A DNA stretch of 62,601 nt, the filler included, from Trichosphaerium sp. ATCC 40318 (taxonomy: Eukaryota; Protista; Tubulinea): assembly GCA_038496445.1 (NCBI GenBank). It is 3 parts of 3 records of this genome, joined end to end, with 100 filler letters (N's around TTAATTAATTAA, not from the genome) between each part and the next. Parts side by side here need not be neighbours in the genome. Positions count along the whole stretch, not along the records: positions 18,062 to 35,532 come from JALMLS010000114.1; 2 more parts are not named here. The stretch is one strand, 5' to 3'. The position numbers and the translations under genes were made by a program. The notes below the pieces were generated by a model. That model was not told the origin of the DNA and ran no database searches. It saw nothing but the letters and a program-made list of their open reading frames with translations. Shown here piece after piece: positions 18,062 through 35,532 of the stretch; positions within the stretch are counted from its first letter, which is position 1; each line of letters starts with the position of its first letter.

Positions 18062-18074
18062 TATTTGATAATAG

Positions 18075-19616
18075 GTGATGACTTGGATTTTGTTAAGGAC
18101 TAATATTGAAGAAAGTATTGCTGAAGTATCATCAGTGTACCTCTCAGACTTGAACACTAAAGTAAAGATTCAAAACTTGTTTCTATATTCTTCATGTGCG
18201 TTTTAAAGAAAGATTTGGACTTTGTTGGATGTAATGCTTATTTCTTTTTAGCTGCTGATCCGTGGAGCGGTGCTTCTGGAGATGGAGCTGCATCTGCTCT
18301 TTTGAATGAAATTGTAGCTTACTACAGTGTGAATGAGTGCGTTGGATTTTTCTTCTTTTTTTCGATATTGAGCTAATTTTTATTTAGTCCTACACGTCGT
18401 AGTCTCCTCAGTGACTATGAGATTGATGCTTATGCGCTTGTTACTACACGTAATATTGGTGGTGGTACAAATAGCTTTGTTGCTGGTCTTGCAAATGTAG
18501 ATGTTTTGTGTGGAACGAGAAGTACGTGAATTGATAATGGTAGAAAAAAATACTTTTTTTCTGCATTACCAAATTAAATATTATTGTGGCAAGTTATTGA
18601 TGTTTTTCTTTTTTTTTATAGGCGGATCTGTTAATAGAATGTACACTCCTGAGCAAAAGACATCAAGATTTAAGGGATTTGTTGTTACTGTAGCACATGA
18701 ACTTGGTCATACAGTTGGTAGTTCACATACTCATTGTTATAATACACCAGCAATGGCCATAGATGGTACGACATGGATTTTTTTGCTCAAAGAGGAAAAT
18801 ATCTCCCGTTTTTTTTAATCTGTCACATTCGATTTATAGTGCATTCAACAGTTTGTTGCTGCATCAATTCTAGTTGTATATGTAAGAGTATAATGGAGTA
18901 TAACAGTCTAATTAGGTTTTGCATCTGTTCATGTTGATGGATGTCAATCAGGAGAGACATCAAGAGGATCTGCTTGTTTCAGTGGTGCTGAGAGTCAACC
19001 CGCTGATGGAGGAACTATTATGTCCTACTGTTCCAATATTGATATCACTTTTGGTGCAGAAGGAAAGCATGGTACTAATAGTAATCGTGTATCATTGTTA
19101 CTTCGTACAAAGATTGAACAAGCTGGTAAGTAGTCCCAGAGGAAAAGATAATCAAAGTTTTCTTTTCTTGACTTTTGTCGACCATGCTTAACTCTTTACT
19201 GACCCTTTTATTCTTTAGCTGCTGCAGAAAGTAGATGTCTACTTAGAGAAGATTTATCATCAAACTCTGGAGGTAGTAGTGCTGCAGGCGCTGCTATAGG
19301 CGTCATCTTTCTGATCGTTTTTATTATTGTTGTTGTTTGTGTTGTTTGCTACTTCTTATGGAAGTCAAAGAAGTTCTGTTTTGCTCCTGCAGCAAGTAAG
19401 AGTACTTACGGTGGGTCAACATCCCATACTACAACACATGCACCTTCTCCAGCTGTACATGCTAGAGCTGCTCCTGCACCTCCAGCCGCTGCTCGTCCTG
19501 CTCCTGCACCTCCAGCTGCTCATGCTGGTCCTCCTCCTGTCAACCGTGGTGCAAGACCTGAACCTCCACCAAAGCCTAAAATTACCAAACCTTTACCTAC
19601 ACCTCCACAACACTAG
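18075..19616 (+). CDS. Metzincin (reprolysin/M12B-like) metalloprotease with C-terminal TM helix and Pro-rich tail (5' truncated)
   Basis: HELGHTVGSSH zinc motif, GTIMSYC Met-turn, hydrophobic AAIGVIFLIVFIIVVVCVVCYFLW, then PAPPAA/PxxP repeats. Confidence 0.85.
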
Positions 19617-19930
19617 TTTTAGAAAAAACCACATAGGCGCCAAGTCAAAAGAGAAAGAAAAAGAAAAAGAAGATTATGTGGAAAAAAAAAAAGAATTATT
19701 TAAACTTCACATTCCTTTCTTTGGTTTTCCTTTCGCTTTTGTTGTATTAATTATTGTATGGAAAAATAATAAAAAGTTAAAAAAACTTGCTCGTACAACC
19801 CGTTGGAATGAAACGATTTCGCAAAGAGAAAATCTGTAAAGACAATCTTTCTTATTTAGTTGACATCATGATACATGCACTTAAAGGGGAGTAACTTAAC
19901 CGACGCAACCTATTGATAAGAGTACTTTAA

Positions 19931-20434
19931 GGGCACATCCTCTAATTTCAATTTTTGATTTTATACCATTGGCAGCGTACTTTTCACAGTCACGTGTTTT
20001 AAAAATACCGTTCTGTAAACAGTAATTTAAACACAAAAACAGGCCTTAGACCCTAACCAGTGAAGGCTGTTTGGCCTAATTACAGTTACAATAGTGCCTC
20101 AACAGTATTAGAGCTCCTCTAATTTAGTTAAGTGCACTCTGGGCGATTTTGAGGTGATTTTTCAAACCCGTTTTAAAACCCTAAAAAATCATGTTTATTC
20201 GTTTTTATTTTTTAACGTGTAGAAAATGGGTGTATCGTAGCAAGTAAAACAGCCGTGTGGTACTCTTTTTTTGAAAGTGTGCAATTCATAATAGGATTTT
20301 GCACTTTCTTACACGGTATTTTACTGTGCCCATGTTTTCAATAGATGACCACTATGTAACCAAAAAGCTCTGGTTAAAATTACAGGTTGCCAGAGTTATT
20401 TCAAAAAAACTGTCTTGAAAATTTGGGTGTCCCC
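19931..20434. mobile_element. Putative non-autonomous Kolobok-like element
   Basis: TTAA on both sides (19927-30, 20435-38). Purine-starting imperfect TIRs GGGCACATCC..AATTTCAA vs reverse complement GGGGACACCC..ATTTTCAA. No ORF. Confidence 0.5.
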
Positions 20435-20615
20435 TTAAGTACTATGTACAGAGATTGGGGGTCTGATTTATAGCAATAGGAGAGCACGCGACTATTTTTC
20501 TGTCGAGTTTTACCATCTATGGAAACGTACAGTGAACGATTCTTGTATTTTTATCAGAAATATTTTTTTCTTGTTTTTTTGGTAGTATACTTACAACAAC
20601 ATCTCTGTTCTTATA

Positions 20616-21668
20616 ATGTCTGTCTCTAGCGTGTCAAATGAAGACTTAAAAACGCTTTTGCTTAATACTACGTCCATTGAAAACCATCCAAACCCGGGTT
20701 GTAGTAGATGCGGAGATGGAATTTATCACTATAGTTTCAGAAATAATGATAAATTACATGTCGGTATTGAACACATTATTCCTTGCCATGAGAGAAAAAT
20801 AAGAGAAGCTAAAGAAAGTGGATCGAGCGATAAAGAAATAAAGAAGTTAGAGGCTATTATTGAAAGGTTTAAGGCTGATAAAATGCTTAAGCAAGCTAGA
20901 GGAATTTATGATGAAATTATGTCAAAAAAAAAGAAAGAACTTGACGATATGACTTCTGATGATCTTCAAATAGCTTTAAAGAAATGTATGTTCAAGCAAC
21001 ACTTGGGTTCTTATGTTTTAAACCCTTCATTTTGGCATAAAACCTCAAACGGCTTTGTTAATCGCGTTTTTCCGGAACACCTTAGCGTTGATACTCTGTG
21101 GAATAAGATTCCTATTTATCACTGGGATTATGTCATAAGAAGATGGGTAGAGTCAAAAGGAAGAGATGTTAGCGCACACGCCAGCTACATCAAGACAGAA
21201 ATACCCTTATCAGAAGTAATGAAACGTGTTGAAAAGTTCGACATTGAAAAAGGTGAAACCAGTCAAGCTACACTCGAACATTTCAAGGTGTGGCTTCAAT
21301 CTGTTCTTGACAGTGACTCAAGTGAGGAAAATGGTTGGAAGCTCCTCACATGCTTCTCGGCAGCTGCAGCGGTTCATGAACAGTGCAACAATGGTGGATG
21401 GGACCAAATCAGAGGGAACTTTAAGCCAATCGCACATCACTTTGCAATTCCTGGATTTCTGTTATGTGGATATCCAAAAGCTGCTAAAATCCTCATTGGA
21501 GCTATTTATCATGATGAACCATGTGGTGATGATGTTGAAAGTATTGCTATGTATTCTCGTTTTGATCTTATCGTGAAACTATGCAAGGCTGTTTTTGAAG
21601 CTAAAGAGGACTCTTTGTCGTTAGCGTTTGTTGCTTCAAAGCATCTTCGCTCAGTAGTTTCTTTGTAG
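20616..21668 (+). CDS. Intronless 350-aa protein with a C-terminal DMP19/DUF4375-like motif
   Basis: Uninterrupted ORF. VHEQCNNGGWDQIRGN...AIPGFLLCGYPKAAKILIGA resembles the EVxNGGFxQ...L..IGA..A pattern of DUF4375. Confidence 0.6.
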   Translation: MSVSSVSNEDLKTLLLNTTSIENHPNPGCSRCGDGIYHYSFRNNDKLHVGIEHIIPCHERKIREAKESGSSDKEIKKLEAIIERFKADKMLKQARGIYDEIMSKKKKELDDMTSDDLQIALKKCMFKQHLGSYVLNPSFWHKTSNGFVNRVFPEHLSVDTLWNKIPIYHWDYVIRRWVESKGRDVSAHASYIKTEIPLSEVMKRVEKFDIEKGETSQATLEHFKVWLQSVLDSDSSEENGWKLLTCFSAAAAVHEQCNNGGWDQIRGNFKPIAHHFAIPGFLLCGYPKAAKILIGAIYHDEPCGDDVESIAMYSRFDLIVKLCKAVFEAKEDSLSLAFVASKHLRSVVSL

Positions 21669-23200
21669 TGTTGTTTTTGAAAATTCAAGTTGGATAGCCT
21701 CAATTTGTATCCACATAAATAAAAAACGAGTACTAATTAATAGCTTGAATGGTTTTATGAGGTTAAATTTAACAGGTATGCTATACGTTTTGGTAAGTAC
21801 CTTGGTGTTGGTACATGCGTGGGTTATGTAAAAAACGAATTAATGTGTTAGATAGCTATCAACATTAACTTGCTCACGTTTATAAAATGAATGAATGGCG
21901 TTTATTAAAGGTCTATGGCTCCATTTAAGACCAACTTTTGGGTAGCTGTTTAGATTTTGGAGCGCAAAGAGTCTGCCAGCATTCAAGGGAATGCCTCATC
22001 AAATCGAGATTGTGCGTTTAAATTTATTGGGCAATAAAACCGATTTCCGCTAAGACAAGAATCCGCTCCGAAGTGTATTTTCGTACATTGGACATGCACT
22101 ATTTTTTTTATTTTTGCTCCGGATATTTTCGGCTTTTGACGGTTGTGTGTCGGAATTTTCCTTGTTTTTCCGGATAACGAGATGAATTATACTAAGGGCA
22201 ATTGGTGTTTTTTCCTTGTTTGGTGAAAGCTGCTGGCAATATGGTGCACTCACATTGCTTAGTGTCAAAGCTGTACCTAATGGCATTGATGTCAATGAGG
22301 TTGGGCAACTGGAAATTGCCTTACCTTAGAGAAACTTGGTACTTGAAAATTGAAGCATGTACCTTTGGTGGTGTAGATTGAAGGAGCTGTACAATGTTTT
22401 TAATGCTCATTTGTTTCCACATTCTTTGAGCGCACTTGTTTTATGGCTCATAGGAACAGGAGGAAGTGTACTTATCTCCCTGTTTATGCAATTGACAATT
22501 GTTGACACCAAGTGTCAAGTGACACTTGCAATGAGTCAGTTTAAGGAACAATTGCTAATTGTACGCCAAAAGCAATCATAGGAATTAATATGTAAAAGTA
22601 AACATGTCCATGCCGTGAAAATTGCATACTGAAATTACAAAACAGATAAAAAAATTTGACAATAGCAATTGGCAATTGCTTTGTACTTACAGATTCGTTG
22701 CATTCCTCCAATGGTTTGTCGTTTGAATTAATCTTGTTGAGGGGATTATTACACCTCTGGTATCTGTGTATATTCTCTTTGTGGCAGTCTGTGCTGATTG
22801 TGTTGTTTCAATGATTCTGAAAACAAAGGTAGCAATTTACAATTGCAGAAGGATACCTTTTTTAGATGGAGCATGTACAGGCTGTGAACAGTACATAATG
22901 CCCCTCTGTTTCTGAAAGGGAGTGTACCCAAACTAAGATGAGCTAATGTTAATGCCATAACAATAAAGAAGTTGTGTTGAGCACCTCAATTGGTACTCAT
23001 TCGTACCATCTTCAAGGTACTGTTTCATGGAAGAGTGCAAGTTTCTCAAAGCTGTTTGTATGTCACTGAATGCATAAGCAATTTGTATTGTACGTCACAT
23101 TAGGTACCCACCTGTAGGACCTTGGTCATATGACAATAGTGAATATCCGGAAAAAAACGTGTAAAGTCGGCGATATCCGTCAAAATCCGAAAATATCCGG

Positions 23201-24674
23201 CCAAAGGAGTCGTCATGAAAAATCACAAGAAAAAAAAAACTGTCACAAATATATTAGGAGGTTATTTTCCTGTCCCTGTGAGAAGCAATTCCGTTGCAAT
23301 TTCTTGTAAAAAACCTTTGGGAGTAAGGGTTCCGTCTTGACACTTATACAGAATAAAAGCAGTTGTGAGGGTGTAGTAAAACCAACCAACAAGAAGTGTC
23401 ATGTTCCATTTTTTGAACCGCCTATCTGTACAATAGGACTTGACCAGCTGGCCAAATTGATCACTATTTCCCTTGGTGTCATCATTTTTATTTTTGAACA
23501 TATCTTTTATTGCTACTGTCAAATGAACTTTTGTCATCATGCATACAGTAGAGAGTGGTGGCCAACTTTACGATTTCATTGCTATTTGTTGCAACAGCAA
23601 CAGTTTTGTCCAATGGTGCCAATCTTGTGTATCCCACAGGCACTTTTTTTGCAATTGATTGCTGCAAGGCCACTGACAGTGGTTGGTATTACATGATGAA
23701 GTAGCGTCTAAGTCAAATTCCCCCGGCTTGTTGAGATCCATGGCTGAACAAAAATTAGAGTCACATGTAAAAAAATGGCACCTTCCAATTGTTTTCGACC
23801 ATTTTGCACATGAAAGAAGGATTCATTTGGTGTGAGATGAGGCTATATCAAAGTATTGATAAAGTCAATCAGATATCTAGTTCGAATCATCGAGACACTT
23901 CAATTCTATGGCCCATGCGTATGGTTTCTTAGTGTTGTGAGTTTTTATATGGCAATTGAAATATTATGATGGAATACAGATTTCATCAGCACAAGTGAAA
24001 TAACCTGGTACCATGTGGCGCTTAAAGACAATCACTAGAAATGAATGTACCATGTTAGCATCAAATTTCATGTTGGCAGAGATGTTGAAGTAGTGATTAA
24101 GTTGCAACAAACCTGTTTTCCCAGTAAATAACATTTGTGCTTCACCTGTGCTCCACAATGTGCGAATATTCTGTATTCCAATAATCCCATGCCATATCAC
24201 TATACCAGAGAAGTTCGTCATATGGGTAGTGATCCCATTTTTTAGGTCAGTGTGATGTTGTTCATATGTGCTTGTGAATAACAAGTTTTCAAAAATCTTA
24301 TTATCCCACTTGAAGGTGAAAAATGCCATTGGTGTCTTGGCTTTTCCAATACCAATAACGTTACGTTGTTTTTTAAGTTTAGTCCAAACGTCTAACACGG
24401 GATAGTCAACATAGGTAAATCCGTAAGGCTTCAATGCTGCTGTCAAAATCGGAGCCCAAAGAAATATTAGTTGCCAGTATCGCAGATGTTATGAAGTACA
24501 TACTGTATGGATTCTCTGTTTGACCGTTTCAACACGCGATCCTTTGGGCGTTTGTCATAATACTTGGAAAAGCCACGGCGTTGTTGCGACATTGGGGAGT
24601 TACGTATTCTTTATTGTGAAATCCACAATTTTTGGGTTTACAAAAGTTGACTTTTTTGATGACGACTCGATGGG
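23201..24674 (-). mobile_element. piggyBac-family DNA transposon, 1474 bp, CCGG target-site duplication
   Basis: TIRs CCAAAGGAGTCGTCATGAAAAA vs rc CCCATCGAGTCGTCATCAAAAA (18/22). CCGG at 23197-23200 and 24675-24678. Encodes a decayed DDD transposase. Confidence 0.88.
23262..24592 (-). pseudogene. Decayed piggyBac-type (DDE_Tnp_1_7) transposase
   Basis: HMVPGYFTCADEICIP, KKPYAWAIELKCL..RYLIDF, HFFTCDSNFCS, KGNSDQFGQLVKSY..RRFKKW..TAFILY..FLQEIATELL: three catalytic Asp contexts, with several stops and frameshifts. Confidence 0.85.
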
Positions 24675-24874
24675 CCGGAGCGAAAGTAAAAAAAATAGTG
24701 CATGTCCATTATAGAACAAATGTCGTCTGCCTACAATAAAGGAGTATTGCATACTAAAGGTGCTTTAAATGGTCTTTTACTTTGGTTTTTTGTGCACGCG
24801 ATCGCCTTAACCTTTTTGGCTTAAATTCGCTTTATCACGTGTTACGAACAGCTCGCCTTCTACTTTTTAATAAA

Positions 24875-27800
24875 ATGGTAAACTCTTTGATTTCTTTGTT
24901 GTTGTTTCTTAAAACCATGTTAGAAGCTTGGAATACTCCTCGTATTCTTCTTTGGCTTATTTTGTACTTCTACATGTTCGCCAGCTGTCAATTTACAGCT
25001 TTTTAACTGTACTGGTGGTGATAACAATCAAAAATGGACTTACAAAGACAGAACACTCATTGTTGGGGTGTGTTGCCATAAACGACGCTTTTGTCAACAT
25101 CTAACGCTCTAACAGGAAGGCAATAACCCCTCTCTTGGGTGCCTTGATTGTGATGGTTGTACTACCAATCTTATACCGCACTCATGGAAATGCGAATCAT
25201 CTACAGCCCAGCAATGGGTAGTAGACCTATCGGCGAAACACACACAAATTCATCCCAAGTCAGACCTGACACTTTGTTTGACTGCTACTGCAGACCGTGA
25301 GGGATCTGTTGTGTGGCTGAGCCATTGTAATCCGGAGAGGTAATAATTGGGTTTTAAAAAGGGTAATGACACGTGATAGTGCAGTACAGCAATGGACTTA
25401 TAACACTACAACAAAGCAGTTTTCTATAAATCTACCTACAAACCAATGTCTTGATGTGGGTTCGGACTTAGATGCCTCTTGCAGCAAGCCTCCTTTGAGT
25501 AGCTATCCATATTGTAACGCTAATATTGGCGCTGAAGAAAGAGTTACCGACCTTGTATCTCGCTTAACGCTAGCAGAAAAAGCGCATTTGTTGATAGACA
25601 ATAATCTTGGTGTTCCAAGACTTGCTGTACATTTGAAACTGCTTCTGAACTCTTTTAATCTTAAGCTGCAGGTGCCACGACTGAAGTTCCAAGAAGCTCT
25701 ACATGGCGTTCATACTATTTGCGGAGAGAAATATAATGGGAATACTGGGTGCCCAACGTCATTTGTTCATGGATTACTGCTGGGTGCTTCGTTCAACAGA
25801 ACGTAAATGTGGCTTCTTTTTCGTTCATTTTTTTTCAAAATTACACCTAGGCTGTGGAGTGCTGTTGGCTCTGCTATCGCCATTGAAGCTCGTGGCTTGA
25901 ATAAACAAGGTATAGCAGGGCTCGTTTTCTGGGCTCCAGATATCAATCTATTCAGGGATCCGCGGTGGGGACGAGGCAAGTGATGTCGATTTATCTTTCT
26001 TTTTCTTGTATTTTCTTTTTGCTCAGTGAAATACAATATAGGCCAAGAAGTCCCTGGCGAAGATCCTTTTCTTACATCTGAATATGTACAGCATTACTCA
26101 AGAGGTGTACAAGAGGGAGATGATCCAAGATACTACAAAGCAATTTCAACAGCAAAACACTTTTCAGACTATGACATAGAAGGCAACGGTGAGGTATGTA
26201 ATAGCCGCAATCTAATATCGGTGTGTTTTATTTTCGCTTCTTGTTACACTTTCAAATGTTTGCATCAATGTTAAGCCACTTGAAAGCATTAGAAACTTTA
26301 TAAACAACCAGAAAAAAACACAATGTTTGATAATCAAATGACTGTCTTTGTGCTATTCCTAGTTTTTTCCCATATTTTTATCAACTTGTTCTTACAATGT
26401 GGTTTCTAATTTTGCATGTAAGGTAGTCCGACAAAGCTTTAATGCTATTGTAAACCTCAAAGATCAAGTAGAATTCTACTGGCCAGCTTTCAGATCAGCT
26501 GTAGAAGCTGCTCATGTAGGTTCAATCATGTGTGCATACAACGCAGTGAACGGCATTCCAAGTTGCGGAAACAATGAATTCATAAATAACGTAGCAAGAA
26601 AGCAATGGCAATTTGACGGATTTGTTGTCTCTGACTGCTTGGCTATTACTGATGGAGCCTTTACAGAGTATATAAAAAAGAACTTTAACGGATCTACAGA
26701 CCAACAAGTACGCGTTGCTATCAACGCTGGATGTGACATGAACTGTGGTCAGTACTTTTCATCATACATACCAGATGCAGTCAAGAATGGTGTGTTGAAA
26801 GAGAAAGACGTAGACAATGCGTTTATATCATCATGGAAGTATCTTTTTATGCTTGGTGAGATGGATGAGGTACTTCTATAGCCCTAGCGCCTCTTTTGTA
26901 CTCACTTTCTCCTTTGTAGAATGTCAGTTACCAAAAACTTGGACCTGAAGTTGTTGACACTCATGAACATCGGCAACTTGCCCTTGATGGTGCTCTTCAG
27001 GGTTTCGTCCTATTAAAGAATGAGGATAACGTATTGCCACTTGCTAAGGATAAATCAATTGCCATCCTTGGACCTCATTTCAATGTAACGATTGAGATGT
27101 TGTCTACTTATATTGGATCTAATGAACTCGTATATAACAACTCTCCTTACCTAGCTTTGAAGAGAAAAGGTGTAAAAATAGCAGGATATGCAGCTGGTTG
27201 TGACTTGATTTCCAACGATACTTCAGGGTTCGCTGCAGCTACAAAGATTGCGAAAGAAGCAGATTACGCAGTTGTATTTGTTGGATTGCATCCTGGAAAG
27301 GGAGGTGGAGCTGCAAGTGAAGGAGAAAGTCATGATAGGGAAATATTAGAGTTGACTGGTGTTCAAACTGACTTAATCAAAGCTGTTCATGCGACTAAGG
27401 TACACTTTCTTGATGTATTCCAGTTGTCACGTGTTTTGGAACAACTTTCTTTTTGTTTAATAACAGTATTATTAGACGCCTACTATTGTTGTGTTGATAC
27501 ATGGTGGCCCTCTTGCTATTGAATGGACAAAGGAGAATGTGCCTGGAATCGTAGATGCTTTCTATCCAGGCGAATTCGGAGGTACTAAAGAACAAGGATC
27601 CTAGTAATTTTACAGCCAATACACAACAGTTTATTTTTTAATTATTTTATAGGAGAAGCAATAGCCTCTATTCTATATGGAGATGTTAGTCCATCAGGAA
27701 GACTACCAAATACAATCTATCCTGCCGATTTCATCAAACGAGACAAAGAGAACATGAACCTCAGAAATGATGGTATTTCTTTTGACAAACAGAACAGAAA

Positions 27801-28460
27801 CAACAAAGTTAATTTACACTCTCTTTAGGTGGTGTAACGTATCGCTACTACACTGGAACGCCCCTGTGGTCTTTTGGTTTTGGTTTGTCTTATACTACGT
27901 TTAACTACACCACTGTACAATCGCAGATATCAGTGTCCGCGGAGGATCTTGCAATCGGACATAAATCTCTTTCAAATCCTCAGCCAAATGTTGGATATGA
28001 AGTAACTGTTAAGAACACTGGACATGTTACCTCAGATGTAAGCGTTCTCGGGTTTGTATACAGTAATCATACAGACTCTCCTATTAAGAAACTATTTGGC
28101 TTCCAACGTGTACACATGCTGAAACCAGGCGCTAGCGAAACGGTAAGCCTTTTTTTTACTTTTAAACTTCACAAACAAGGCTCTTCGTTCTTTTGTGAAA
28201 GAAGGGCCAGTTCAAACGACTGATTTTTCTTCTAAAATTTGCTTGTGTACAAGCGCATGATTTACTGATGAACTGCCTTTTAGGTGTTGTTTACTGTACC
28301 ACCAAGAGCACTTTCATTGGTGGATTCAGAAGGTAATGAGTGGATTAGAGGAGGTGATTATACTGTTACATTTGGTGATGAACCTGCTATGGCCAAAGCC
28401 AAATTGATAGTCCAAGGAGAGGATATCCTTGTTATGGAGTATAGCGCAATGTTCAAATAA
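24875..28460 (+). CDS. Secreted GH3 beta-xylosidase-like glycosidase with N-terminal ricin-B (QxW) lectin domain and C-terminal Fn3-like domain
   Basis: Signal-like MVNSLISLLLFL; QKW/QQW repeats with Cys; [71 protein letters not shown]. Confidence 0.93.
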
Positions 28461-28978
28461 AGCAGCTGTTTATTTGTCCTTTTTTGATTTCTTGTTCATA
28501 AGTACACAGCGTAGGAAACAAATGTATATGATCTTGGTTATTTCACATATGAATTGACTTGTTTGTACGGTGTTTAAAATGCCAAGTTTCTAAACAACCA
28601 AACAGCATAAATTATAATGAAATTGAACTAAATGGTTACGAGTTCATTCCGATTTATACCAACAATACTTTGGAAGAATTTCTATAATATCGTTTTCATG
28701 GCTTAAAGAAACCCAAATGAAACGAGTCTCCTTCAATTGGGTTTCTGACCACTCAAACCAGTTAAAACCTTCTGCCTCCTGCGGAAAGTATCGAACACTA
28801 TTGAAGTCATACAAAGATACAGTTAAACTGTGCACCTGGAGTTTACAAACACAACGAAACACACTGTTAAGATCAGCCTGAGTAACATTTGATGGTTCTC
28901 GTTAAGAAAAACTTTATCTTCCTTAAATGTTTAAGTGATTGATGTGGATAAGTGATAGTTCTTGTACAAGTAAATACA

Positions 28979-30721
28979 ATGGGAGAGCAGTTCAAACATT
29001 TCACTTCATTAAACTACGCTGACCAAGGTAAAGCGTTCCTAAACGTACGTAGATTATTTGATCAAGCAATAATGACACAACACGCTAAGCGTTAACGCTC
29101 TTTTTTTAGGCCTACTGGTCTGAACTTAAAGACGAGGCCGAGAATGTGTGGGTTTGGGCTCATAAATTCGTTGAGTTGGACTTAGATAAAGCTGAAGAAG
29201 GCCGTGATTTGGATGAATTCAAGTACGTATCGTTTCGTTAGCACGTGGGATAAAAGCCACAAAACGTATTTTTTTTTCGCTGTTTCTTGCTGTATTTGAC
29301 AGTCCTTTAGTGCTCATCGCTTCTTGGAGTCACTTGGTACGTCGCAACAAGGCCTTGGTTTTTCTATTTTGTTTACTCACTTAATACGAACTATTATTGA
29401 TCATTATGAATAGGTGAGACCAAGACTATCAAGGCTATGAGAGAGGAAAGCGAAACTGAGCTCTTGAAAAAAAAAGCCTTCAAAACCGTTACTAACTTTT
29501 TGTTTAGGAGATCCTTGACGCAGATATTGATTTCAACAAAAGATTAGCACTCATTGAGTATGCTCTTTATTCTTGCGTTTTGAAAGTAACTGAAATTATA
29601 GGTACTGTTTGTGGCGTTACAAGAAAAACGTTAAAGAGTTTGTGAACAAGCCACAGGTACGTATTATGGCGTTCTTGTCACGTGAATTTTAAAATAACGA
29701 TAATTTTATTAGGGTGAAGGCGAGGCCGTTAAGAAAGCACAGAAGATGCTCGAAGAAGTCCTCACTTTACTTGAGGATGTAAAAGCTAAGGCTGAAGTAG
29801 CGAAACAAGCTGTTGCTGAGGCTAAAAAGTAACTAACTTTTTCTATGTTTTGTTTCGAATGTTCACTTTATTCTAGGACCGAGAAAGCCGCAAGAGAAGC
29901 AGCCGCTGAAGCTAAAGCAAAAGAAGATAGTGCCAAGCAAGATGCAGAGGCAGCTAAGAAAGCTGAAGAAGAAGAAAAAAGAGCAGTCGCAGAACTTAAG
30001 GTAGCGCCATAAAATAACAAATGTGCTTTGATGTTCACGTTTCTTAGGCCCAAGAAGATGCTTATAATAATAAGACTGAAGAGCTCAAGAGGAAGACTGA
30101 AGAAGGTGGTGTTGTATCACGAAACAGAGCAAAGAATGAGCTAGCTCAACACTTAGAACGCAAGTTCTCATTAATCCGTTTGAAACTCCTTTATTTACGT
30201 TCTATTTTTAGAGGATCCTCTTCCGCTCCGTACTGCTAAATTGACTCAAGAAGCGTCAGCAAGAAAAGCAGAAAAAGCAAGAGAAGAAGCTGAAGCTTCA
30301 CATAAACAAGCTGTAGCAGGTACACTAACCATAAAGCTAGATAAAAAGCAAACTAAACACCTTTAGCACGTGAGGAATCTGATGCTGCAGCTGAAGCTGC
30401 TGCCGCAGCTAGAAAAGCTTCTGAAGAGGCTAGCGCCGCCGCTGATGCCGCAGTTGATGCTATGAATGCCAAGGTCAAAGAAGCAGAGGTAAGTATATTG
30501 TTATTGCTTCTTGTGTTGAAGAAGGCTGATGGTTTTTTAAGGCTGAACTTGAAAAAGCAAAGTTGGAACCATGTGGACAAGGAAACGTATGGGTAAGTGG
30601 TTGAGTAATTAGTAGAGTATTCATATACCTAACTCTTACATTTTTATAGTGGGTAGAACGTCGTTTGTTTGAGGCTAAGAAGTACATGCCAATGAGTAAG
30701 GGAGGTATAGCTAAGAAGTAA
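28979..30721 (+). CDS. ABP34-related / 'TolA-like' EF-hand coiled-coil protein (calcium-regulated actin-bundling family)
   Basis: YADQGKAFLNAYW, LDEFNAHRFLESLGET, DIDFNKRLALIEY, A/E/K-rich coil, NRAKNELAQHL..DPLPLR, GNVWWVERRLFEAKKYMP. Confidence 0.85.
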
Positions 30722-31095
30722 AAAAGACGTCCTGGTTTCTTTTAAACACGTGATCTAAATAAAAACTTCGCATATCTAGCCTAGAGTCATGTTTTTCTCC
30801 AGTAAGGATAGTAATAAAAATAGCCTTGGAGCTGATTGTTTCGGGCTTGAAGTGAATTTTAGCAAGAAAAACTTGTTGTCACATTTAATTTGGCCCGTCA
30901 AACACCCAATTCATTCTTTACGTCTTTTGATGGAAAATTTGGAGATGTAGGGTTGATTATATACTATGTTCTCATAAACCTACGGGTATTTTCAATGATT
31001 AGTTGATTTTTTAGCTAAAAATTCTACCCGTTCAAGTTTTGCACACGTGCATTGACTTAATATCAAAAGATAATAAACTGAACACAGGTACAAAC

Positions 31096-31863
31096 ATGAG
31101 TCTACGAAGAGCAAGAAAAGGTTCTCTGACAACAAACATTAATAAACCAATACCCAAGAATTCAAAAAAGGAAGAATCAAGGTGATCATACTAAATTAAC
31201 TCCAAAATAAGCTGTTCTCCATTAACACTCTACTTAGTACAAAGAAGCTCCGACTAAACAGAAGCGTATCAATGCCAGACGAGTTTATTACAAGACCAAA
31301 GAAAAAGCCAAAAAAACGTGCGCTTGCATGTGCTTATGGAGCACTACCTAAACCGCCAACTAAACAAAATAATGCCGAAAAAAATACAAAATCAAAATTA
31401 ATTAAAGAACCGACGCCTTCAGAAGCAATAATCAAGGCGTACAGTGATAGTAGTGCAGTTGACAATAAGACAAAAAGAAAGCGGGCAGTTTCGATGTACG
31501 AAGCGTTGCCTAGACCACGTGGAAAGCGGTCAAGTTTAATGTTCGAAGCGTTACCAACACGTGGAGCCAGAAAACCTGCAAAGAAAACGATCAAAGATGG
31601 TAGAAGGGTGATTTCTAGAGCTACAGGGAAACGAATGCTAAAGCGATCGTTGAGCGAAAACGAAATAATTGAGTTGGAAAAACAAACACCACAACATGGC
31701 GGAAAACGAACAAGGTAAGAAAGAACTCTACTGATTGATTGTTGTTTTCAAGCTAAAATACCATTTTTTCTGACTTTCTTGAAGGCGTAGATCTGTCTAC
31801 TTAGCATATAATAAAGCCAAAGAGGACAGACCACCAAATTGGCGTATCCATAGAGAGAAATAA
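31096..31863 (+). CDS. Basic low-complexity orphan protein, paralogue A (3 exons)
   Basis: MSLRRARKGS..RSVSMPDEF..YGALPKP..RAVSMYEALP..LKRSLSENEI..RRRSVYLAYN..RPPNWRI; same exon structure as paralogue B. Confidence 0.8.
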
Positions 31864-32263
31864 TAATGTATTGTCAACAAGGACTTTCTACAATGATGTA
31901 CCAATAAAGATTACCATTGAGTGTAAATTAACAGAAAACATATGCTTTGTTACAAAAAGTAGCTATTTGAGACAGGCTTATGTCGGATAAAAACAGTATG
32001 ATCCTGACCATTATAAGTGAAAGATCATTTTCAAAACACGCTTTGTTGTACTGAGGACTTATTGTAAAAACGTGATTTTTACGGACGTTTTTCTGATTTC
32101 GTTGTTACTGGCGACTCTTTCTGCAGGTATTAGAATGGTTGCATACACATACATTGTAGATAATGCAAACACCCAATGATCCGACAGCGAGTTTCGTTGA
32201 AAAAGCGAAATAATTTTCCTCTAAATTCATAGCCATACCTTAATTCAAGCTCTAAGTCATTGA

Positions 32264-33084
32264 ATGGCAATGTCTCTAAGGCGAGCCAGAAAGGGCTCCA
32301 CTACAACGCAACTCAAAAGAGCTGTAACTTCTGCTCCTACTCCAAAGGAAGAGGATCAATCTCCGTTAGTTACATTTTTTTTTATCCAAATAAGCTGGTT
32401 TTTTACAGCTCCTTCACTCCAATTCTCTAACACGTGTTTAATTATGTAGACCATTTCCATTAAATAGAAGTGTATCAATACCTGATGAATTCATAACAGG
32501 ACATAAAAAGCCGGTGGCTGCGCAACATCGAGCACGTGAGTTGGCATGTCGTTACGGAGCACTACCAAAACCAAACGCAACAAAAAAGAAAAAGAAAAAC
32601 GCCGAAACCACTAATACACGGCCCACGACGCCACGGAATACGCTTGCAGAGGCATACAGAGATTTTGATAACAAAACAGAAATTTCAGAACGACAAAGAG
32701 CAGTCTCAATGTACGAAGCGTTGCCTAAACCACGTGCTCCCAAAAAACCTTCAAAGCCTGTTCATAATAAGCAAAACATACGCAAACCAGCAAAAAATGC
32801 CAATAACAATGTCAAAGGTGGTAGAGCAGCGTTAGCTACTGCTAAAGGAAAGAACTTTTTAAAGCGATCGCTGAGCGAAAATGAAATAGTGGCTGTAGAA
32901 AAAAAACCTCAAGAAGAAGGTGGTAAAAGAACAAGGTAAGTTGAAGACTCATGTTTGACTTCAGTTGGTTGCACTTGTATGTAGTACTTACTGTTTACAA
33001 AGGCGTAGATCTATATACATGGCTTACAATAAACCCAAGGAGGACAGGTCACCAAATTGGCGTATCCGTGGTGGAAGAAAATAA
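32264..33084 (+). CDS. Basic low-complexity orphan protein, paralogue B (3 exons)
   Basis: MAMSLRRARKGS..RSVSIPDEF..YGALPKP..RAVSMYEALP..LKRSLSENEI..RRRSIYMAYN..RSPNWRI. Confidence 0.8.
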
Positions 33085-33594
33085 AAGTGTATTTCTAACT
33101 AAACTTGTCAATAACAAAAATAAACAAACCAAGTTGAATCCTGGAAGGTGATGTGAAACTGAGTGATGTTTCTACGCACACTGTTCAAGAAGTTAAGACT
33201 AAGGTATGAATTACATTTGCCCTCCTGAAGGGTAGCGTCGCCATCATTGAGTTGACCTAGATTGTCGTGTTAAATTCAAAATGCGCTGTTAGTTACCTCA
33301 TACTTTCGCCTATGTTCGCTAGTCATTTTCTTTAGTTTTGAACATTTATCTACTTAACCTTATTTTGTGAAGAAAGAAAAAATGGTTGTACACGTGTTTT
33401 ACTCCGTTACAGACGTTTGGGTAAACTTGAGTTGACTTCGTATAAATCAACAACAACAACCGACAAAGCTTAAACAACATGGCCAGCAATCACCCACATC
33501 CCACCCAAAAATTTCCTTTTCAATTTGTTTAAAAACTGTAAAACCTTTCTTTTATTTTCAAGTGTTCTTGTATAATATAACAAATGTAGCAATT

Positions 33595-35198
33595 ATTTGA
33601 TTTTTAGTTTTCTCCAATCACGTGTTTTCTTAGAAGAACCAGCACCTTTGAGTTTTCTTTTTTGTCTGTTCCATAACTGTGTATTTTTCCTGCCAAATCT
33701 ACCAGGCGAACAGCAAGCTAATAGTATTAGCTAGGTACACTAAATCATAGACGCACTTGAATAGCTAAAATTTTTGCGCTTTCTGTGACCAGAATCACCA
33801 CCAGAAACAAGTCCATAACTTTCAGGTCTGATAATAAGCCGGTACCTCAAAAGCGTCAGGATTCCCATGCAGCCAAAAAACATACCACAAAGTGCTTAAA
33901 TAATATATTAATAACAATTTTACGCGTCAAGCGTCGCTTTTCAACTGGATCTTCCATGTCTGCCGTGCACATCCTAAGAAGGTTATTTGATAATAATACC
34001 ATGTAATTAACTTACTTGATGATACGGTTAGTAAGCCAACGCAAGCCATAAGGGATTAGCGAAGCATTCTCAGCTATTTGGCTCAATATTTTATAAATGG
34101 CATTAAGGAGAAAGCATTTGAGGATCAGCTGTTTGGGTGTAAGTTAATAATCAATGTATAAACCTAAAATACCTGCAGATTTTGTCTTTGAAGACTGGAA
34201 CAAAAACCGCTAAACGATACGTCAAATTACAAAGACACAAGCAAACCCAAACCTCAGCATCGTTGGTAGATAATATTTTGACACCTTGTTCTTATGTTCT
34301 TGAATAACGTAATTCAAGACATTTCGCAGTACAGTATACAAGTACGGTTTACCATACGTTAAGCTAACATTCAGCGTTACCAATTTACCCTTTACAGTTT
34401 ACGTACTTATATAAGTCGATAGTAGGTCAGAGGTAAAGCAGGAGCTGCTCAAAAAGCTTGATTTTACGTTACAATTTGCGTTTTGGCACCTCTGCTACTT
34501 GCTAACAAATATGAGCGCTTGCACTTATTGTAAAAATCCAGAAGCAATACCTCAATGAATATCAAGAGTAATGACTCGTCAGGCATCGTGTGACAGTTTC
34601 CAATATAGTGTGAACACGATAGCTTGAGAAACACCGTGTTGTTGGCGAGTCTTGAGAAGGTACCTGCGTGTTTAAGAATTTCAAGAAGGTGACTATTGTC
34701 TGCACGCAAGCCAGATATCAACACACCAGTTGCCTTCACAAAATAATTATTAATATAAAATAATAGCACGTGGTTTTGTGTAGGTAATTGGCGAAACGGT
34801 TGATTAATTGCGGTTTTGTAAACTACCTTACGGAGAGCAGTGGTGCTTCTTTAAACCGTTTTGTTTTTTTGACACCACTGAAAGGCATCGCAAAGCCTTT
34901 GTTCCATATTTGCCTATCCAATCGCGCACGTCAGAGATAACTTCGAACAATTCAAGCGACTTCTGGTTGATCTTCTTTTTTATCAGAGTGGTTGGACTTT
35001 TGATCTAAATACTCGGTTACACAGCCTTTGTGTCGTATTTTGGCAATAAATTACGCACCTGCAGCTGTGATAGCTCTTCATTTTGCAATTCCTCCTGTAA
35101 TTGCGCTAGCTTGTGCCCATTGCAGTAATTTTTCTTTCGGTTGATTGTTATGCTCTACGTTATTTTGGTTCGCTGGCGTTTTCTCCTTAGTAGCCATC
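33595..35198 (-). CDS. Probable spliced gene of unknown function (boundaries uncertain)
   Basis: Exon-like open stretches (KLAQLQEELQNEELSQLQ; ATGVLISGLRADNSHLLEILKH...) bounded by GT/AG. No family recognised. Confidence 0.35.
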
Positions 35199-35532
35199 AT
35201 TGGGCTGTCATAAAGCTAGTGTTATACCCATAAGGTGTTTGAGGCCTTACAAATTTGGCAGCACTTTTTGACCTGCCTTTGACCACCTTTTCTACCACCG
35301 AGTAAGGTAACCACTCGTGTACGTTCATTAAAAACCTCAATTTATACTTTAATTGTCGTAGCGCATCTTTATCAAAACTTTTTGCGTAAAAGCAAAAACA
35401 ACCAACCTTCGGTCCATTCATAGATAGGCAAGCTATTCGCACAGCAGAAACTAATCTTTTTTCAAGGCAATGAAACTGTTTCGCGCCACCACTGCTGCCT
35501 CAGCGCGTGCTCGTACTGTCTCCTCAAGGTTT

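Follow-up and report, generated by a model that had tools for sequence, protein, structure and literature searches.

This study concerns a window of 62,601 nucleotides, filler included, from Trichosphaerium sp. ATCC 40318. One of its pieces (JALMLS010000114.1, window positions 18,062 to 35,532) carries a 1,474-bp transposon at 23201-24674, whose ends are 22-bp terminal inverted repeats (TIRs) with 18 of 22 positions paired. The transposon is flanked by two copies of CCGG, lies inside one of the inverted repeats of a second, non-autonomous element and holds a decayed transposase gene of the piggyBac type. The features at the locus, in window coordinates, are as follows.

22090-24707, no strand: non-autonomous host element that measures 1,140 bp once the insert is subtracted, bounded by inverted repeats of about 90 bp and with ATT on both sides (sequence, repeats and in-silico excision).
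22119-22122, no strand: lone CCGG in the left repeat of the host element, the paralogous "empty site" (two repeat pairs overlap here; in-silico excision).
23197-23200, no strand: left copy of the flanking CCGG, read as a target-site duplication (sequence and repeat search; the equivalent place in the host's other repeat is a single CCGG).
23201-23222, plus strand: TIR adjoining the 3' end of the transposase gene, beginning CCAAAGGAGTCGTCAT (repeat search).
23265-24437, minus strand: main exon of a decayed piggyBac-type transposase with a triad of three aspartates (DDD), carrying five in-frame stops and two frameshifts (tblastn with the related proteins P0002, E=8e-56, and P0008, E=6e-53; Pfam).
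24504-24592, minus strand: probable first exon, a basic N-terminus beginning MSQQRRGFSKYYDKRPKDRVLKR and followed by a GTATGT donor (by analogy with the intron of the related element L001).
24653-24674, minus strand: TIR adjoining the 5' end of the gene, reading CCCATCGAGTCGTCAT on the minus strand (repeat search).
24675-24678, no strand: right copy of the flanking CCGG (sequence and repeat search).

The junctions read AATAT CCGG followed by CCAAAGGAGTCGTCATGAAAAA at the left end, and TTTTTGATGACGACTCGATGGG followed by CCGG AGCG at the right end. The two CCGG copies around the TIRs had been described in a first-pass annotation of this DNA, and both the sequence and the repeat search confirmed them. 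The repeat search returned inverted arms of 27 nt at 23196-23222 and 24653-24679 that are 85% complementary, a match that becomes 18/22 once TCCGG is excluded. Within the window, the TIR core GAGTCGTCATSAAAAA was found only at the two ends of the element, against a chance expectation of 0.04. CCGG itself is scarce in this 17.5-kb piece, with 11 occurrences as compared with 115 of TTAA.

The host element, whose inverted repeats begin GGACATGCAC, records how the insertion altered its right repeat. This repeat is split by the transposon: its part at 24675-24713 is matched by the left arm 22084-22122 and its part at 23177-23200 by the left arm 22119-22142, and the two left arms share just one CCGG, at 22119-22122. 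When positions 23201-24678 were removed in silico, the right host repeat aligned without gaps to the left one across the junction, and the inserted DNA therefore comprises the element plus exactly four bases. The first-pass annotation had predicted that excision of the element with one CCGG would restore agreement with the opposite host repeat, where a lone CCGG stands at that place, and this is what the gap-free alignment gave. An orthologous empty allele was also sought through the neighbouring 350-aa open reading frame (ORF) in the gene-position collection, and nothing is on record there for that ORF. As a separate observation, the host repeats hold several TCCGGA hexamers (22118-22123, 22169-22174 and 23145-23150), which is the context that the inserted family appears to prefer.

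The transposase gene runs on the minus strand and is no longer functional; the window copy is a dead, decayed transposon. The intact relative P0002 aligns to window positions 24413-23292 in a tblastn search with 33% identity, and two frameshifts were assigned to the window copy because its middle segment reads better in another frame. A three-frame translation of the minus strand showed that the three catalytic aspartates are retained, in the contexts CADE, CDSNF and NSDQF. The best ORF of the window copy (23964-24446, minus strand, 160 aa) matches Pfam DDE_Tnp_1_7 with E=9e-4 and 19.1 bits, which is under the cutoff of 22.4. The ATG of the probable first exon lies at 24592, and a short intron is placed at about 24447-24503, although no in-frame splicing is possible in the decayed copy. 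The reading frame ends 64 bp short of the element end and therefore leaves no room for a cysteine-rich domain.

The relatives of this transposase were found to be few and distant. An exhaustive phmmer search with the 160-aa window ORF over 1.84 billion representatives returned just 19 proteins at E<=1e-3, with a top identity of 33%, and a second search added P0020-P0035. The full-length members of this clade comprise 389-482 aa. Four of them (P0002, P0008, P0011 and P0016) match DDE_Tnp_1_7 from profile position 1 or 2 to position 349, with E values of 4e-20 to 2e-29, and Pfam reported no other domain in these four proteins. A profile of the clade, compared with the PDB, matched Trichoplusia ni (T. 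ni) piggyBac (6x67) over residues 114-510 (E=7e-19) and piggyBat over residues 77-479 (E=7e-16). Within this span lie the DNA-binding, catalytic and insertion domains, whereas the acidic N-terminus and the cysteine-rich domain fall outside it. The AlphaFold model of P0008, with a predicted local distance difference test (pLDDT) value of 89.4, had 6x67_C as its top structural match (template modelling (TM) score 0.74, E=3e-17, 15% identity), with piggyBat second and Tn5 far behind. The residues D172, D250 and D350, which correspond to the T. ni triad D268, D346 and D447, are invariant across 21 clade members.

The gene architecture of the relatives agrees with that of the window copy. Clade elements are about 1.45-2.2 kb long and encode transposases of about 400-440 aa, and their ORFs stop 60-80 bp ahead of the element ends. 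L001 contains a clean 39-nt intron with GT and AG borders at positions 271-309, whose removal links a lysine-rich first exon in frame with the main ORF and gives a protein of 441 aa; the elements are therefore eukaryotic. Because of such an intron, prokaryote-style gene calling in the databases clips the N-termini of clade proteins. A scan of viral contigs for the clade found none. A further match, at positions 3001-3117 of L009, lies inside a 325-kb metagenome contig and shows 38% identity over 39 aa (E=2e-6, calculated among the candidates only); it probably falls outside the clade.

By transposase homology, predicted fold and end structure, the clade belongs to the piggyBac superfamily, within which it is a deeply divergent branch. 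The assignment of a piggyBac-type DDD transposase in the first-pass annotation is thus supported by the Pfam matches of the relatives, the PDB profile match, the modelled fold, the triad and the CC termini. Short inverted repeats with an initial C, usually CCC...GGG, characterize the superfamily. Two canonical piggyBac features are absent from the clade, namely the TTAA flank and the cysteine-rich domain.

The absence of TTAA became apparent from the flanks of the other copies, which the first-pass annotation had proposed to tabulate. The flanking tetranucleotides are as follows.

Window copy: CCGG on the left and CCGG on the right.
L003: CCGG on the left and CCGG on the right; the contig ends at the flank.
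L004: CCGG on the left and CCGG on the right; the contig ends at the flank.
L006: CCGG on the left and CCGG on the right; genuine, differing sequence lies beyond CCGG.
L016: CCGG on the left and CCGG on the right; the contig ends at the flank.
L015: CCGG on the left, where the contig begins; the right end lies beyond the contig.
L001: CCGT on the left and ACGT on the right.
L002: ACGT on the left and ACGT on the right.
L008: ACGT on the right, the only end covered.
L017: ACGT on the left, the only end covered.
L010: CCGA on the left and TCGA on the right.
L011 and L012: TCGA on the left and TCGA on the right; their left flanks differ.
L013: TCGA on the right, the only end covered, in a flank different from those of L011 and L012.

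L005 and L007 were left unscored, as both start directly at CC, with no flank, and are cut short at the opposite end. The window's own family was also found in the public run X1, where two further left ends, at other sites, carry CCGG and one right end carries CCGA. Across the table and run X1, the ends carry CCGG, ACGT or TCGA together with three one-base variants, and TTAA was present at no end examined. The first-pass annotation had proposed a new clade targeting CCGG. Its proposal of a lineage that does not use TTAA holds, but the shared property is a palindrome of the form NCGN that varies by subclade, and not CCGG alone.

Several of these copies lie at different insertion sites. Beyond TCGA, L011-L013 show at least two different flanks on each side, while L001 and L002 are 99.87% identical over 1.5 kb and lie at different sites. 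The presence of near-identical intact copies at different sites in both groups suggests recent movement, and with it that these families may be active. The read-assembly contigs L003, L004, L015 and L016 halt at CCGG or one base past it, as expected if the copies in a sample all share CCGG and diverge just outside it. An artefact of MspI restriction libraries was considered for these contig ends and rejected: the TIRs begin exactly there, the flanks of L006 and of the window copy are real, and the sister families carry ACGT or TCGA. Two further observations concern individual records. The tail of L010 (positions 1811-1831) is Illumina adapter (reverse complement TACACGACGCTCTTCCGATCT), so its last bases are non-genomic. 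A 151-nt contig of run X1, aligned to window positions 23276-23323 and 24610-24656, joins window position 23323 to 24610 with 12 filler bases and represents an internally deleted derivative of the same family, akin to miniature inverted-repeat transposable elements, with CCGA after its right end.

A quick maximum-likelihood tree was built from 27 sequences. It unites the TCGA families in a single clade with a support of 99 and the ACGT families in a second with a support of 100; all remaining sequences carry CCGG, the window copy being placed among them on a long branch. The protein subclades track the flank type, which is therefore heritable and lineage-specific. The preference seems to reach beyond the tetranucleotide to hexamers, often TCCGGA or CACGTG: read inward, the tetranucleotide is preceded by T at 5/6 CCGG-family ends (TCCGGA; window copy, L003, L006 and L016) and by C at 6/6 ACGT-family ends (CACGTG; L001, L002, L008 and L017). 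L010 hints at a CTCGAG hexamer.

Taken as a whole, the window copy is in our judgement probably a dead autonomous cut-and-paste transposon from a compact, divergent piggyBac branch that inserts into CCGG, ACGT or TCGA, most likely with a 4-bp duplication. The idea that it is an ordinary, TTAA-specific piggyBac that landed once at CCGG by accident is barely credible. Canonical piggyBac does use non-TTAA sites in about 2% of events (PMC3499692), but the known off-target sites are one base from TTAA, whereas CCGG differs from it at all four positions, and TTAA is missing from every other copy and related family examined. The caution in the first-pass annotation that a single decayed copy might be a rare off-target event thus no longer applies, since same-family copies in run X1 and five related families carry CCGG and the sister subclades carry ACGT or TCGA. 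It is also very improbable that the tetranucleotide just forms the outer edge of the inverted repeat, in which case the CpG-centred target would be illusory and the lone CCGG of the host a coincidence. CCGG, ACGT and TCGA are palindromic and always stand beside the ends, so that the flanks alone do resemble extensions of the repeats. Removal of both CCGG copies, however, leaves the right repeat of the host 4 bp short, whereas removal of one gives the gap-free alignment. Moreover, the nearly identical L001 and L002 differ in their left outer base, which must therefore belong to the flank or target and not to the element, and none of the complete insertions in the flank table has a further direct repeat beyond the tetranucleotide.

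The length of the duplication is less readily read from these data, and several points weigh against the interpretation given above. The site is palindromic, and a 4-bp duplication, a 2-bp CG duplication (with ends GCC...GGC) and a blunt central insertion all give the same empty site. That empty site is single and paralogous, being the host's other repeat and not an orthologous unoccupied allele. Of the 4-bp duplication claimed in the first-pass annotation, the four extra bases relative to the host's other repeat stand, but with a palindrome one such site cannot prove 4 bp over 2 or 0. The 4-bp repeat is broken at the left end of L001 (CCGT), the left end of L010 (CCGA) and a right end in X1 (CCGA), always at the outer base; random mutation was rejected as the cause, as the chance that all three would fall on the outer base is about (1/4)^3. 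The 2-bp and 0-bp readings absorb these mismatched ends without extra assumptions. With 4 bp, the ACGT-family ends CC... and TG... are not mirror images. Finally, the relatives are known mostly from short contigs of metagenomes or read assemblies, and DNA was available from only about a dozen.

We therefore weighed the alternative in which the same clade, with the same preference for CpG-centred palindromes, either duplicates just the central CG (a 2-bp stagger) or cuts the site bluntly at its midpoint and duplicates nothing. In that case the outer bases would represent the terminus of the element on one side and a preferred flank base on the other. Every flank in the table and in X1 fits this without mismatch, including L001 (read as C-CG-T ... 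A-CG-T), L010 and X1 record 3. The empty site of the window is equally compatible with it, and the repeat symmetry of the ACGT and TCGA families spans the tetranucleotide but not always more. It nevertheless appears unlikely. Three subclades would each have to evolve a flank-base preference complementary to their own terminal base, as 19/22 outer bases complete the palindrome (hand tally, flank table and run X1), a relationship that a palindromic 4-bp duplication gives for free. Canonical piggyBac is formally just as ambiguous, and there the biochemistry shows 4 nt. The termini of L003, L004, L006 and L016, in which CCGG is followed by CCGTAGA, line up with the T. ni end, in which TTAA is followed by CCCTAGA (PMC7351741), and the two match only if the element starts after the tetranucleotide. 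The first base past the tetranucleotide is C at 15/23 table ends, and the first C is the sole position conserved across piggyBac-like inverted repeats (PMC5381638). A 4-nt stagger is kept even in the distant ciliate PiggyMac, which fixes no more than the central dinucleotide (PMC3408717), and about 2% of canonical piggyBac events go to sites one base away from TTAA, for example CTAA (PMC3499692). Because of this end homology, the conserved C, the palindrome-completing outer bases, the PiggyMac geometry and the known use of near-cognate sites, the 4-bp reading is favoured over 2 bp and 0 bp by analogy with canonical piggyBac ends.

Under the 4-bp reading and by extension of canonical piggyBac chemistry, the 3'-OH of the transposon would attack 4 nt into the flank and form a hairpin, and the excised ends would carry 4-nt 5' overhangs. 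Being palindromic tetranucleotides, these overhangs could allow both seamless re-ligation of the donor and annealing at a new target. In the piggyBac pathway, the element carries the donor tetranucleotide as 5' flaps once excised, and insertion at a near-cognate site would then produce a heteroduplex. One daughter of this heteroduplex would have the target base on one side and the donor base on the other, which is the pattern seen in L001 and L010.

With regard to the residues that could read the target, the T. ni structures show TTAA melted and held as single strands: N440 makes a base-specific contact to the second A of TTAA (A-2), V414, L416 and Y439 form a pocket for the methyl group of the second T, and the final A is paired to the first T while stacking on Y283 (PMC7351741). 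In the clade, the motif aligned with Y439-N440 is YD in 20/21 members (Asp343 in P0008), in an alignment that is gap-free up to the D447 equivalent. The position equivalent to Y283 is still aromatic (Y, H or F), and the clade alignment at the V414 and L416 equivalents is too unreliable to be read. An aspartate carboxylate that reads the N1-H and N2-H2 of guanine is a familiar adenine-to-guanine switch, as in the NKxD motif of GTPases. By this analogy, the Asp at the N440 position makes the protein a plausible source of the central change from TA to CG. In any palindromic tetranucleotide the first and last bases remain complementary, and it is this feature that the T. ni structure uses.

These considerations lead to a tentative and somewhat doubtful proposal, in which retargeting has occurred naturally in two layers. 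The central dinucleotide would be set by the protein through the Asn-to-Asp change, which would switch A to G, whereas the outer pair would be carried as a DNA memory in the 4-nt donor flaps. This outer pair, whether C·G, A·T or T·A, would be borne by flaps that must anneal at the new site, and subclades could drift among CCGG, ACGT and TCGA through near-cognate insertions like those of L001 and L010. The pocket for the thymine methyl group might accept or even prefer 5-methylcytosine.

The surroundings of the transposon contain several other genes and ORFs. A glycoside hydrolase family 3 gene lies at 25366-28223 on the plus strand, in at least six ORF pieces separated by short introns, and the piece is therefore eukaryotic; its guanine plus cytosine content is 38%. 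Two paralogous lysine- and proline-rich ORFs at 31272-31718 and 32514-32939 (plus strand, 148 and 141 aa) form a tandem duplication with a period of 1,218 bp. The 350-aa ORF next to the host element, at 20616-21668 on the plus strand, gave no significant hit in Pfam, and the gene-position collection lists no exact entry for it.

The closest characterized systems are T. ni piggyBac (IFP2) and piggyBat of Myotis lucifugus (6x67/6x68 and 9c0f). They share with the clade DDE_Tnp_1_7, the fold (TM 0.74) and the DDD triad, as well as the aromatic residue at the Y283 position and Y439. Their ends begin with C or CC, with CCGTAGA of the clade resembling CCCTAGA, and a palindromic 4-bp flank lies directly outside. 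In contrast to both, the clade has CCGG, ACGT or TCGA as its flank instead of TTAA, at about 15% identity. Compared with T. ni piggyBac, it lacks the acidic N-terminal region and the C-terminal cysteine-rich domain, has Asp in place of N440 and forms elements of 1.45-2.2 kb as opposed to 2.5 kb. The cysteine-rich domain is reported to be essential in T. ni piggyBac (PMC5861402). Paramecium PiggyMac offers a parallel to the NCGN rule, since only the centre of its 4-nt overhang is fixed (PMC3408717). Unlike the clade, however, this centre is TA, and PiggyMac, a host gene that has been domesticated, serves to excise internal eliminated sequences; it retains the cysteine-rich domain and has no inverted ends of its own.

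Within the papers searched, no piggyBac lineage with CCGG, ACGT, TCGA or palindromic targets was described. A survey of 157 piggyBac-like elements reported TTAA throughout, save for five single copies that were ascribed to mutation (PMC5381638). These exceptions are AT-rich (TTTT, ATAG, TTAT, ATAT or ATAA), mostly with unequal sides, and unlike the clade they form no consistent CpG-centred lineage. The largest mining study required both the cysteine-rich domain and a TTAACC flank (PMC13461360); such filters exclude the clade by design, which may explain why it went unnoticed.

TTAA specificity is the defining trait of piggyBac and also what chiefly restricts it in gene delivery, and the clade breaks this rule. 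The structural explanation of piggyBac targeting has so far rested on a single target sequence. With the same fold, three subclades distinguished by the outer base pair alone and a candidate one-residue determinant, target choice becomes directly testable. The clade further suggests that the supposedly essential cysteine-rich domain may not be required for a piggyBac transposase to work, in elements of about 1.45 kb. Given that the targets contain CpG, an interplay with DNA methylation is possible, while methylation sensitivity and use as a tool, which the first-pass annotation had raised, are speculation. If the two-layer proposal is true, the piggyBac target would be reprogrammable by one residue together with the flanking tetranucleotide, in a transposase of about 400 aa for which the cysteine-rich domain would be dispensable.

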